This document shows, piece after piece, positions 46,740 to 52,200 of a DNA stretch of 64,000 bases; position 1 is the first letter of the stretch, and the number at the start of each line of letters is the position of its first letter. A program made the translations under genes and the position numbers. Location: positions 248,001-312,000 of the forward strand of contig NW_020846109.1 of NCBI RefSeq assembly GCF_003704095.1, read 5' to 3'. The notes under the pieces are model-generated. The model worked only from the letters and a program-made list of their open reading frames with translations, was not told where the DNA came from and did no database searches. Source of the stretch: Pocillopora damicornis (Eukaryota).

Positions 46740-48187
46740 ATGGAGACAAAAGATATTGTAAAATGGTCCATGGTCGGTTTTTTCATCCTCTTTTTTTTTA
46801 CTGGCCTCTCTCTGCTCATTTTCGCTGTCACCGTATCAACGCCATTCGGAGACTACCTTACGATGAAAGCCGCCTCGTTCCCGGTGAATTATGGACTCAG
46901 AATTGGTCTTCTGATCCTTCTTTTCTTCATTACTGGGCTGTTTGTCTTTGCGGTAGTGAAAGAAAATAACAGACTTCTAACATTACTGGCCATCTTGTTC
47001 ATCATCTTGTTTCTTGTCGAGTTCATTATGGGAATAGTGTATTTTACGTTGAAGAATGAAATGATTGTCGTTAAAAAGAAACTTAGCAATGGGCAGCAAA
47101 TGCTGGCCGAGTATGGAAAGGACGAGAAAGTCACCAAGGCCTTCGATCAGATCCAGCAGACTTACGCCTGCTGTGGAATTGTTGACTATCGTGATTGGTT
47201 TACTTCAAAATGGGCAGCAGCTCAGGTTGGTGAAAATATTTGCTTTTTGTTTTCTAGACGTGTCTTTTGCTAAAATGTAACCCCAGTATTAAGACGAAGT
47301 TTAGGACATGTTATCCTCTTTGGAATTGTAGCTGAAGGTAATCATGAAGCGTGCACGCCCGAAATACGCCAACTTCCTACCACGTCCTAAGAGGCACTAG
47401 GCATTTTCCCATCTAAATTATGGCTACTAAATGCGTCCGAAATATGTCCTATAAATAGGCTAATATAATTGGTAGTAAACACGAGATTTTTGAGGTGTGG
47501 AATGATTTTTGTTTAGACTCGTATCATCCTTTCCATCAATTTCCGTATGTTTCTGATAGAGTTAAGTAGTAAAGCGCTTTTGTGCAGAGGAGCCGATACT
47601 CTTAGATCGGAAAAATAATCTCGTTCTCATCCAGGAGTCCCGCTGCTCCAGATTTGTATCTACCCCTTATTTGTGTCAGTTGTGTGCAATAAAGTCGGTG
47701 ACTATTTTTTCCTTAGGGGGTGAACAACAGGGTACCAAAGTCATGCTGTAAGTTCCCGACAGCCACCTGTGGTAATGATATGGACTTAAAGAACCCGATG
47801 GATTTCATCAATATATTAGGATGTACGGGACTAAATTTCGCCTACGATGACAAACTGCAAGTGGTGGGAGGGGTAGGTTTGGCTATCGGTTTTCTGAACT
47901 TATTCGCCCTATTGTGCTGCATCATATTCTGCTTCTGTTTCAACGCCGCGCGGGGACTTAGTCCTAAGGACGCCTTAAAAGGAGAGGAGCCTAATGACCA
48001 ACCGTCGTCGAGCTCATCGAATAAGGGCCGTCGACGTTCCTCAGCTCAAAGCTCATCAGGATCCTTGCGGCGCCAACCCTCTAAGAAGGCTCTGCGTGCA
48101 TCAAGGGAGGACCTTAATAATGACGAGAACGATGATGACTTACCCTCTTACTCAAATAAGGATTTACTCGATAAATCTGAAGGATAG
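46740..48187 (+). CDS. Tetraspanin; 2 coding exons (46740-47225, 47717-48187)
   Basis: Three N-terminal TMs, EC2 with QQTYACCG..YRDW, VPKSCC and a final GC before TM4, and Cys-rich juxtamembrane LCCIIFCFC. Phase-0 intron CAG|GT...ttag. Confidence 0.92.
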
Positions 48188-49049: not shown

Positions 49050-49059
49050 AAAAAAAAAA
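49050..49059 (-). terminator. RNA Pol III terminator (T10)
   Basis: Ten T residues on the minus strand, 3 nt after the tRNA discriminator base. Confidence 0.85.
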
Positions 49060-49062
49060 GGC

Positions 49063-49109
49063 TGCCGAGACCCGGGATTGTTCAGAGTTCATACGAACTC
49101 TCCGGTTTT

Positions 49110-49160
<51 letters not shown>

Positions 49161-49165
49161 TCGGC
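49063..49165 (-). tRNA. tRNA-Phe: tRNA-Phe(GAA) with a 30-nt insert in the T-loop (49078-49107)
   Basis: GCCGAGA TAGCTCAGTTGGGAGAGC G TCAGA CTGAAGA TCTGA AGGTC CCTGG TTCAA [30 nt] TC CCGGG TCTCGGC A. All four stems pair; the gene is 73 nt once the insert is removed. Confidence 0.93.
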
Positions 49166-49280: not shown

Positions 49281-52200
49281 ATGGCGCTTCCGACATTACA
49301 ACCGTACTGGCTGAAAAACTACAAAAACAGGAATGAGGGACTCCTTGTTCGGAGAACACAATTCGAAGCGGAAAGAAGGGAAGCTTGGGATAATAACGCA
49401 CGATATTTCAATAGATCTAACGTGGAGACTACCAAACAACGAGTGTGGGGATCAAGAGAATCTTACGAAGACAGGTGAGATCTGCAAGGATATTGCAAGT
49501 TTTATGACTTGAATGCGGAAATACGAACCTTGTTTTTTTATTTCTGCCCAGATTGACTATTTCATCAGTCATACTTCAGTCTTTGCCCTGGTATTTCCTT
49601 TATCTCATAGATCCAGTTCTGCCACTTTGAGAACTGGCATGTGTCGATCATGCATGGTCATATATTTATATAATCTCCTTGGTAACATTTCATGCCATTT
49701 CAACTTTACCACAACATAATTCAACACTTAGTCACTCCAGCTTACATAAATACGTTAGAGAAATTTGTATTCCCTGGGTAGTATCACATTCTTAGTGTAG
49801 TATCACATTATTTCAAGGGTATACTTTTCAGTCAATCACTAAGGAATGTCCTTAGGATGAACATCTCAAGTTATTCATGCGATCATTGAATTAAATGAAA
49901 TGTCAAACTTTTCAAGGGTGATTTAAGTCTTCTCCAGGGCCACATGAGTGAATGATATTTTGTTTTTAACAGCATGCAAGCACTGGATGGTTTGTACAAG
50001 GAGAACATGAAACAAGATAAACAGCAAAGATTAGATGGGAGGAAAAAAAGACTGTCTGAAATGTTGTTAAAGGAGACTAAAGAGTATGAGGTAAGGTGTA
50101 AAACAAGCTTAACTATTTGACTGTAGTGTAAGGTAGTGTTTTTTTTTGGTTTTCTGTAATTGAGACTTAAAGTAGATTTAAACCAAATCAATTAGTTCTA
50201 CTCACAGGGTATTTAAGAGTCTAGTTGGTGGTCAATTTGAGAGAAAGGGGAAATATGAACATTTGCCATGAGACTTGGAAAACTGTCAACTCTTTGATTT
50301 TGATCTTAAAGGTCATTTGTGTATTGAACAACCACAATAGAGCTTTTCATTTGCTTTTTAATTGAATCTCTAGGAAGAGCTTAAGGCAAAAAGACTTGGT
50401 GGAGCTGGTAGACTATTACAGATGAAAGAGAGGTTTGTAATGTTAAAAAAGAAAACTTGCTTTGATCATCTGTGATGTTTGTAGTAAACATGTCCTGCTG
50501 TTTAAAGTTGCTTACTATGTTGTCACTGGATTAAATTTTCATGAAGTGAACTTTTCTTCCCAGGGCTGATGAGCTAAAAGCTGACAAGGAAGCCAGAAGA
50601 AAAGAAGTATGAGCTTTATCATTATTTTAACTTGGATAGTGTATGTTAGGGTTTGGGAATAAACATTTGCACATTAGATAAGTCATACACTCAGATTAAT
50701 GACACTTACAAGACATCATTCAACAGCATGAAGTTCCCCCACAATGCTCCAAGGTATTGCTTCTGATTGCATTATTTTGTACAGATATGTATACTTATTT
50801 TTTGATTTAGCTATGTTTAGCCATTATTGTATTCTGTGCATGAATGAGGGTCTCAAGAAACCAAGCAGTATCATTTATTTTTGACGATGCACTAATTGAA
50901 CTTTCTTCTCAGATTGCTGAACAAAAATTGTATGATCATTGGAAACAAAATGCCGTAGAACTTAGAGAGGTGAGCATTCATAGTGATTGTTGAGTGCAGA
51001 GATATTTAATCAATAAGTACTGATCATTTTAATTGGAAATTCAACAACTTCTTGCACCAGCATTGTGATATTTTTTTGTTGAACATGGTGATGGTCTGCT
51101 TGCAATGAAGACACAAGATCAAGTGATGATCATGCTCTTTTTTGTACCCTGTTATGTAGTTCTCTGGTGATAATCTGATGGCCTTCTCATTATACTTTAC
51201 ACGGTACTTCTGATGCTTCATTTCCTATTGAAAATCCTGGTTATTTGATAATTTATTGTCTTTTCTAATCCCCATCACTGTAGATTGAAGCTGACCAGCT
51301 CAGAGAACATGTAGTGAACAGCTGGGCTGATCAAGTGTCTGACCGGGAAGAGGTAGGGACTGTCATGTAACCTTGCTTGAATTTCTATTCCAACTGAAAC
51401 ATTTTTTAAAAGTAATTGTCAAGGATGGAGCTGAGGAAAATTTCAGTGGATGAACATATTGCATCTAGCAGGATGGGCCTTGAAAGGAATAGAGATTAAA
51501 AGCAGGTGATGGATAGGTAAATTCCTGAAAAGTCTCATTCTGTTCTTATCTCATTGAATGGCTCTCCTCTTTTTCAATTTAGAACTTGAAGTCAGCAAGA
51601 CAAGAAGACAGAAGGTGTGTGTTTAGTTAATACTAGTAACTCAAGTCACCAAGTATTTAAGCTACTTGAAAGTGCACAGTATGTTTGGTAAGTTGAGGCA
51701 AGAACATATTCTCAGTTACATGTATCATTAAGCAATTTTCAATACTGTCAAAAACATGAAATTCAGGTTTGCATTTACCTCTTGACACTCAATCAAAATG
51801 CAACCAAGGAACAGGTTCACATGTAAAATGTGTACTGATTTTGTTTCCACTTATTGTTTCACAGAATGGATGCTGTTATGGAAAAAGATAGGCTACTTGC
51901 TCTTGAGAAAGAAAGAGCTAAGGAAGAGGAAAAGAAGAGGTTTATTTTAAAATAATGCTAACCTTAAATCTATTTACACTTATTTCAGGGTTTGTACCCA
52001 TCCTGGAAAACCTGAAAAATCCTGGAATTTTATTCTGTAATTTTCCAGGATTTAAAAGTCCTAAAGATTTCAAGATTTAAAGATTTCAGGTCTTAGAAAG
52101 TCCTAAAATTGCCTAAACTTGAGCAAGAAAGTTGTTGGAATTTAGGTTATAAGAAATGTATGTAGACCATAAGGAGAATAATTATTGATTTTGAAATCTA

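Follow-up and report, generated by a model that had tools for sequence, protein, structure and literature searches.

The gene described here, a tRNA-Phe(GAA) gene of the coral Pocillopora damicornis, probably carries a functional ectopic tRNA intron, namely a 30-nt insert in the T-loop that would be cut as a relaxed bulge-helix-loop. Taken together with the further copies found in the genome and on public contigs, the best reading of the sequences is that every tRNA-Phe gene of this lineage is interrupted by a candidate intron of about 30 nt at position 58/59. An initial annotation had presented the locus as a functional gene with a non-canonical intron of archaeal style. All of the comparative tests that we ran agree with the functional, non-canonical part of that description, whereas the strict archaeal-style BHB geometry did not stand.

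A tRNA-Phe gene with an insert in its T-loop

The gene lies on the minus strand at 49063..49165 of the window, the 64-kb stretch of DNA that was analyzed (C2744:248001-312000). It runs over 103 nt, from tRNA position 1 at 49165 to the discriminator A at 49063, and was aligned with 77 other insert-bearing copies. Exon 1 (49108..49165, minus strand) comprises tRNA positions 1-58, that is, the acceptor 5' strand, the D arm with the A box, the anticodon arm with GAA, the variable loop, the T-stem 5' strand, and U54-A58. Exon 2 (49063..49077, minus strand) comprises positions 59-73, with U59, C60, the T-stem 3' strand, the acceptor 3' strand, and the discriminator A. The 30-nt candidate intron (49078..49107, minus strand) sits between the two, at positions 58/59, and a T10 Pol III terminator (49050..49059, minus strand) stands 3 nt past the discriminator. 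Sequence and anatomy are as the initial annotation had quoted them for a tRNA-Phe(GAA) with a T10 run and a 30-nt T-loop insert, the minus strand having been left unstated there.

When 49078-49107 is removed, what is left is a canonical 73-nt tRNA-Phe(GAA) with an acceptor stem of 7 bp, a D stem of 4 bp, an anticodon stem of 5 bp, a T stem of 5 bp, and a T-loop of 7 nt, which bears out the normal T-loop that had been claimed for removal at 58/59. Since A57-A58 reads AA and the 3' end of the insert reads AA as well, junctions at 56/57, 57/58, and 58/59 are equivalent in yielding the same product.

Within the insert, bases 7-24 (49084..49101, minus strand) form a hairpin of 7 bp with a 4-nt loop, whose pairing is perfect, as had been described. 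Insert bases 25-28 (49080..49083, minus strand), which read GAAC here and GAAU in most copies, are complementary to exon G53-U54-U55-C56 (49110..49113, minus strand), the exon strand of a central 4-bp helix, and AA follows both strands of this helix. This pairing had also been noticed before, and the helix and its AA ends prove to be conserved in the comparison given below. The folding energy of the 103-nt RNA is -39.9 kcal/mol, compared with -29.1 +/- 3.4 kcal/mol in shuffles (z = -3.2).

The expectation that default scans would miss such a gene holds for ARAGORN, which reported zero tRNAs over the whole 64-kb window. The Rfam tRNA model gives only a partial match (model positions 8-63, 37.7 bits), in which a false T arm is built from exon 1 together with the start of the insert.

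The Pol III signals (A box, B box, and oligo-T terminator) are present as predicted signals. In the DNA, the B box GGTTCRANNCC (49104..49114, minus strand) consists of G52-A58 and insert bases 1-4; these four bases complete the B box, which the 30 bp would split without them. Among the 78 insert-bearing genes described below, the B box is matched in 59, with insert bases 1-4 supplying its last bases, a C stands at the position-61 equivalent in 64, and a run of at least four T occurs within 14 nt downstream in 70. Insert bases 1-4 can also pair with C50-G53 to make a decoy T stem, which is 95.6% paired and in which one-sided changes keep the pairing; both RNAalifold and the Rfam model pick this decoy.

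As for the surroundings of the gene, a tetraspanin-family gene lies on one side (window positions 46740-47273 and 47720-48187, plus strand; PF00335 was matched on the orthologous contig L117). On the other side is a divergent gene with its first exon at 49281-49478 (plus strand) and its start codon 116 nt from the tRNA 5' end. The order of tetraspanin gene, tRNA, and divergent gene is kept in all orthologous contigs.

Copies, orthologues, and covariation

The P. damicornis assembly that we searched comprises 234,350,878 bases on 4,393 contigs. A BLAST search with the gene found 12 places and a 26-nt anticodon-arm pattern found 10, and the insert is present at the same point in every tRNA-Phe copy with a readable T-loop (ten anticodon arms, one of which enters an N gap). 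Outside the window, the loci are two single ones on C809, one on C1307, a tandem array at C2744:486.3-489.2 kb, and a degenerate copy on C469 with a shorter insert. The visibly degenerate copies are those at C809:61271, C469:530633, and C2744:487283. A pattern demanding a 7-nt T-loop, with up to three mismatches allowed, found no insert-less tRNA-Phe in this assembly and returned only insert-bearing copies and other isotypes. As about 234 of an estimated 349 Mb have been assembled, reportedly without high-identity repeats, insert-less copies may sit in the unassembled part.

The tandem array (C2744:486300-489200) is found about 190 kb downstream of the window and has at least seven head-to-tail tRNA-Phe units, with gene starts spaced about 320 to 760 bp apart. 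Units L003-L007, L011, and L012 have a common upstream motif and all carry the insert; unit 487283 is without an anticodon arm, and unit 489136 enters an N gap. Variation in the 5' segment of the insert is far greater among the tandem-array copies than at the single-copy loci, and exon 2 does not vary there.

Public metagenome records (JGI, ENA, and NCBI) were searched with a pattern made up of the anticodon arm, a free T-loop gap of 14-44, and the 3' end, which gave 56 contigs with insert-bearing genes. Together with eight complete genome copies, they make up 78 distinct genes; the insert is 30 nt long in 66 of these, and in the longer ones the enlargement is confined to the hairpin loop. The pattern could retrieve insert-bearing genes only and fixed some exon letters while leaving the insert unconstrained, so that exon conservation in the 78-gene set is partly a matter of ascertainment. 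None of the 85 tRNA-Phe 5' halves on the fetched contigs continues into a normal T arm; what follows is the insert or else a break or the contig end. Six independent contigs of the orthologous locus (L118, L120, L123, L124, L125, and L127) end inside tRNA-Phe before the T-loop. Short-read assemblers evidently break at the multi-copy tRNA-Phe genes, and the insert is thus partly hidden in draft assemblies.

Orthologues of the window locus are found on contigs L087, L066, L051/L088, L117, L122, and L121, which have the tetraspanin gene and/or the divergent downstream exon in common with it. On L087, L066, L051, and L088, identity is about 80% over the upstream tetraspanin exons, the tRNA, and the divergent gene's first exon; L117, L122, and L121, also complete orthologues, were found by a search with the peptide of the downstream exon (window 49281-49478). 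Two other loci of the genome also have collinear counterparts, with the tRNA in place in each: C809:54-61 kb on L060 (74-85% identity) and C809:430-435 kb on L052 (68-83% identity). Three loci are syntenic across taxa, with an insert-bearing tRNA-Phe at each. The initial annotation had allowed that the insert might be private to this assembly or allele, which is rejected by its presence in all genome copies and at the orthologous loci.

When the window is compared with the four aligned orthologues, the exons are identical at 73 of 73 positions (58/58 in exon 1 and 15/15 in exon 2) and the insert at 23-24 of 30, the differences in the insert being mostly compensatory. The 40-nt flanks are 50-62% identical on the 5' side and 38-44% on the 3' side, and the contrast between fully identical exons and flanks at 38-62% indicates purifying selection on the tRNA at the orthologous loci. 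The most distant orthologue (L121:567-668, minus strand), whose peptide is 72% identical, has an insert of 29 nt, two acceptor-stem pairs changed on both sides, and a hairpin that is off the consensus at two pairs. On L044 and L056, the acceptor and anticodon stems are vertebrate-like via compensatory change, with the insert as elsewhere. The compensatory acceptor- and anticodon-stem changes in L121 and the JAAUXV contigs suggest that these are live tRNA genes of other lineages, and as the insert is common to lineages with changed exons (L121, L044, and L056), it is older than those exon changes.

The alignment of the 78 genes (A1) has 69 distinct rows. Over these 69 distinct genes, the cloverleaf is paired in 96.7% of cells in the acceptor stem, 99.3% in the D stem, 98.8% in the anticodon stem, and 97.1% in the T stem, and the insert hairpin is paired in 93.8% of cells. 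Three hairpin pairs are changed on both sides: one is A:U in 42 and G:C in 21 genes, another is A:U in 61 and G:C in 4, and a third is C:G in 50, U:G in 12, and U:A in 3. Cells changed on both sides number 32 in the 69 genes versus 11.1 +/- 2.5 in shuffles, counts that are inflated by sequence kinship, and when the hairpin is slid by one to three columns, pairing comes to just 21-45%. The orthologue set, with its diverged flanks, provides a fair test of covariation; at the syntenic site of the window, six distinct sequences are paired in 90 of 90 cells, with two-sided changes at four of the seven hairpin pairs.

The central helix between G53-C56 and insert bases 25-28 is paired at 96% over the 69 genes and at 100% among the orthologues. 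Opposite G53, 61 of the 69 genes have U and 4 have C, and the two bases alternate among the orthologues. Within the insert, conservation outside the hairpin peaks in the GAAYAA 3' segment (majority frequency, 0.94), with a terminal AA in 65 of the 78 genes and GAAT or GAAC ahead of it in 67. The anticodon is invariant across the copies. It had been proposed that the GUUC/GAAC helix and its AA would be kept while the hairpin drifts, and this is the picture obtained, the drift of the hairpin being compensatory. Decayed stems in orthologous copies, which had been named as an outcome that would speak against an intron, are rejected by the same data, since the stems are kept.

Splice-motif geometry, processing, and rival explanations

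Under the rule that a cut falls after the second base of the bulge 3' of a central-helix strand, the central helix is obtained with junction 58/59 only; a BHB placed for junctions 56/57 and 57/58 has, by inspection, no central helix. The 5' site lies in a bulge that extends from A57 to insert base 6, which agrees with the relaxed 8-nt 5' bulge of the initial annotation. Its 3-nt 3' bulge closed by G52:C60 fared poorly, as the bulge is 3 nt only via this lone pair, in the worst conformer tested (-4.6 to -5.9 kcal/mol), versus -9.8 to -13.4 kcal/mol with the native T stem. If the native T stem is kept along with the central helix, the 3' bulge is 5 nt, at -9.8 to -11.7 kcal/mol; the T stem and hairpin alone reach -13.4 kcal/mol, and the decoy T arm reaches -12.1 to -12.6 kcal/mol. 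In these predictions, the bulge-helix-loop conformer is one of several near-isoenergetic folds but not the one of minimum energy, the best alternative being lower by 1.7-3.6 kcal/mol.

Of the features of the strict hBHBh' motif, the central 4-bp helix is found here and the two 3-nt bulges are not. The helix and loop of a bulge-helix-loop are both present and conserved, with a 3' bulge of 5 nt instead of 3 when the native T stem is kept. As modeled, the motif is best described as a relaxed bulge-helix-loop, without the strict BHB geometry of archaea, and it is located not at the canonical 37/38 but at 58/59 (equivalently, 56/57 or 57/58). Two other arrangements were considered. A junction at which insert CCGG would serve as the mature T-stem strand is disfavored, as this segment varies in the genome copies and exon 2 is constant, and a pseudoknot of insert CCGG with the T-stem strand of exon 2 was discarded, as it would cross the central helix.

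We infer from the sequences that the gene is transcribed and spliced, and likewise which conformer is active, where exactly the junction lies, and which enzymes act, in the following proposed model. First, Pol III would transcribe the gene via the internal A box and a B box completed by intron bases 1-4, stopping at the T run. In the precursor, the 7-bp intron hairpin would be stacked on the 4-bp helix formed by G53-C56 and intron bases 25-28, which would place the 3' site in a short bulge (AA/U) beside the T stem and leave an 8-nt loop (AA/AUCCGG) for the 5' site. The G53:Y(-3) pair would be the analogue of the anticodon-intron pair, and the layout would be the relaxed bulge-helix-loop typical of eukaryotic pre-tRNA introns, shifted to the T-loop. 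[quoted passage not shown]

The genome encodes a Sen54-type domain (PF12928, 35.7 bits) and, at two loci, the endonuclease catalytic domain (PF01974, 71.2 and 28.1 bits), pointing to an endonuclease of the ordinary animal type. Since an interrupted T-loop precludes formation of the elbow from which such an enzyme measures, splicing of the insert would require that local structure be read instead. A review reports that eukaryotic endonuclease is able to cleave artificial BHB substrates on the basis of their local structure (PMC4090602, citing Fabbri 1998 and Di Segni 2005).

Against this reading, the four-subunit TSEN of animals is said in a review to remove 37/38 introns only (PMC10485636). 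This restriction would favor a scenario in which the insert is removed by another nuclease/ligase pair, or by TSEN guided by a different conformer or cofactor, as would the failure of the motif to show strict BHB geometry and its absence from the minimum-energy conformer. The scenario would also be in keeping with the very short T-arm introns of the Guillardia nucleomorph, which are excised even though most are unable to form a BHB (PMC3728597, PMC4090602). We nevertheless regard this scenario as unlikely, as the features that are conserved are TSEN-type cues (AA ahead of both sites, the 4-bp helix, and a base pair located 3 nt upstream of the 3' site) and the TSEN subunit domains are encoded in the genome. 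The splice sites are, moreover, unlike the IRE1 cleavage-site loop motif, and we know of no further eukaryotic pathway for removing short tRNA introns. It is less probable still that the insert is retained, which would give a coral tRNA-Phe of about 106 nt with an extra hairpin arm leaving the T-loop where nucleotides 59-60 normally bulge out. In the T-loop motif, positions 59-60 face outwards, and insertions are found at this point in other RNAs. Such an enlarged cytosolic tRNA-Phe, with a covarying hairpin arm at the T-loop elbow, is compatible with the conserved length, the covariation, and the presence of the insert in all copies; as hairpin covariation is expected for a spliced intron and a retained arm alike, it cannot by itself separate them. 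The conserved complementarity of insert bases 25-28 to G53-C56, however, would unfold the mature T-loop, which argues for a structure of the precursor only. In addition, an arm of 7 bp at the elbow would be expected to interfere with the D-loop contact, the T-loop modification enzymes, the elongation factor, and the ribosomal elbow contacts, and in the tandem copies the insert's 5' segment is free to vary, unlike exon 2. To our knowledge, there is no cytosolic tRNA with an arm of this kind.

We give a very small chance to the insert-bearing copies being pseudogenes or tRNA-derived repeats, with the real, uninterrupted tRNA-Phe genes residing in the unassembled genome. The assembly is indeed about one third short, lacking high-identity repeats, several genome copies are degenerate, public contigs often break inside the tRNA-Phe gene, and tRNA-headed repeats are abundant in the genome. 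Yet pseudogenes would hardly account for exons that are 100% identical at syntenic orthologous loci with flanks at about 40-60%, for the compensatory stem changes in other lineages, for an invariant anticodon and terminators in 70 of 78 genes, or for 0 of 85 tRNA-Phe 5' halves on the fetched contigs having an intact normal T arm. Nor does membership in a repeat or pseudogene family fit an insert that is in all copies, with stems kept and three loci syntenic. T-arm inserts in eukaryotic tRNA genes have been taken as pseudogenes in a review, on the grounds that one of many synonymous genes is affected (PMC4090602); with the insert in all tRNA-Phe copies found, that argument is inapplicable to the coral.

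Relation to known introns and significance

Ectopic tRNA introns are known from archaea, Cyanidioschyzon, and nucleomorphs (PMC3728597, PMC4090602), and the relaxed bulge-helix-loop is the form described for ordinary nuclear pre-tRNA introns (PMC3728597). Searches of full-text literature, mostly from outside the subscription journals, turned up no animal for which an ectopic tRNA intron, in the T-loop or elsewhere, has been reported. Like the coral, Cyanidioschyzon has nuclear eukaryotic tRNA genes with introns outside 37/38, four of them in the T-loop; its motifs range from the strict BHB to the relaxed bulge-helix-loop, and it was an apparent lack of essential tRNAs that led to the discovery of its genes (PMC3728597). 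Whereas this unicellular alga has 63% of its tRNA genes disrupted, at many positions, the coral has one isotype interrupted at one fixed position. No TFIIIC homologues were found in Cyanidioschyzon, so that the B box is irrelevant there (PMC3728597), while the first bases of the coral intron restore the B box. Splicing was shown by experiment in the alga (PMC3728597) and is predicted from sequence in the coral; the coral encodes a Sen54-type subunit.

The T-arm BHB introns of archaea (Crenarchaeota and others, at 53/54, 56/57, and 59/60; PMC4090602) resemble the coral candidate in being short, in lying in the T-loop, in having an exon-intron helix with bulges, and in being spliced by proteins, putatively so in the coral. 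They differ from it in their 3-nt bulges around a 4-bp helix, which occur in strict hBHBh' or defined relaxed forms, and in enzymes that read local structure only; the coral candidate, by contrast, has a 5' bulge of 8 nt and a 3' bulge of 3-5 nt, and its host is an animal. As summarized in PMC4090602 (for Kawach et al. 2005), the nucleomorph of Guillardia theta also has T-arm insertions, with tRNA-Phe(GAA) among the affected genes and removal confirmed by RT-PCR. On the same account, those introns are 3-24 nt long, mostly without a BHB, and belong to a reduced algal remnant with a tiny gene set, in contrast to the multi-copy family of the coral.

The canonical 37/38 introns of animals (tRNA-Tyr and tRNA-Ile-UAU; PMC4536317, PMC6614914) have the relaxed bulge-helix-loop layout in common with the coral candidate, in which a stem is followed by a bulge that holds the 3' site, a helix that includes the pair 3 nt upstream of that site, and a loop that holds the 5' site. 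TSEN and RtcB are the likely enzymes for both; the canonical introns are known to yield circular products (PMC4536317, PMC6614914). The difference is one of position, since in the coral it is the T-loop that is interrupted, and the elbow that Sen54 uses for measuring cannot form.

The tRNA introns of animals, fungi, and amoebozoans are held to sit at 37/38 only, with a four-subunit endonuclease that measures from the folded tRNA body (PMC10485636, PMC3728597). In all of the tRNA-Phe genes found of an animal lineage, the insert interrupts the very elbow used for this measuring. If it is spliced, animal TSEN would act in vivo on local structure alone, which would provide a natural and testable case of an old biochemical observation, namely the cutting of BHB mini-substrates by eukaryotic enzymes. 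Standard eukaryotic tRNA annotation would then leave corals without any tRNA-Phe, an annotation gap that bears on codon-usage, tRNA-repertoire, and genome-completeness work on reef corals. An intron holding the 3' half of the B box would be constrained by the promoter in DNA and by the splicing motif in RNA. If the insert is instead retained, it would represent a new tRNA architecture for a cytosolic elongator.

With regard to other isotypes, a pattern consisting of the T-loop start, 20-40 free bases, GAAYAA, two free bases, and CC exceeded its control count in the genome for tRNA-Phe only, and none of its matches outside tRNA-Phe had an Rfam tRNA match. Two further loci, C3510:191078-191135 (L023) and C1708:472944-473003 (L024), gave partial Rfam tRNA matches (model positions 7/8 to 63/64) in a search that scored 63 of 19,702 candidates. 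Both have a tRNA-like head followed by a short GC hairpin, a T run, and then a common downstream sequence. They were rejected as T-loop introns and look like a tRNA-headed repeat family that is unrelated to the insert. Another element, of about 155 nt, was seen on the contig that is collinear with C809:430-435 kb (L052:4950-5115); it matches the coral genome more than 60 times, at 70-90% identity, and the matches in the two orientations cover the same coordinates, which makes it palindromic, in the manner of a miniature inverted-repeat element.
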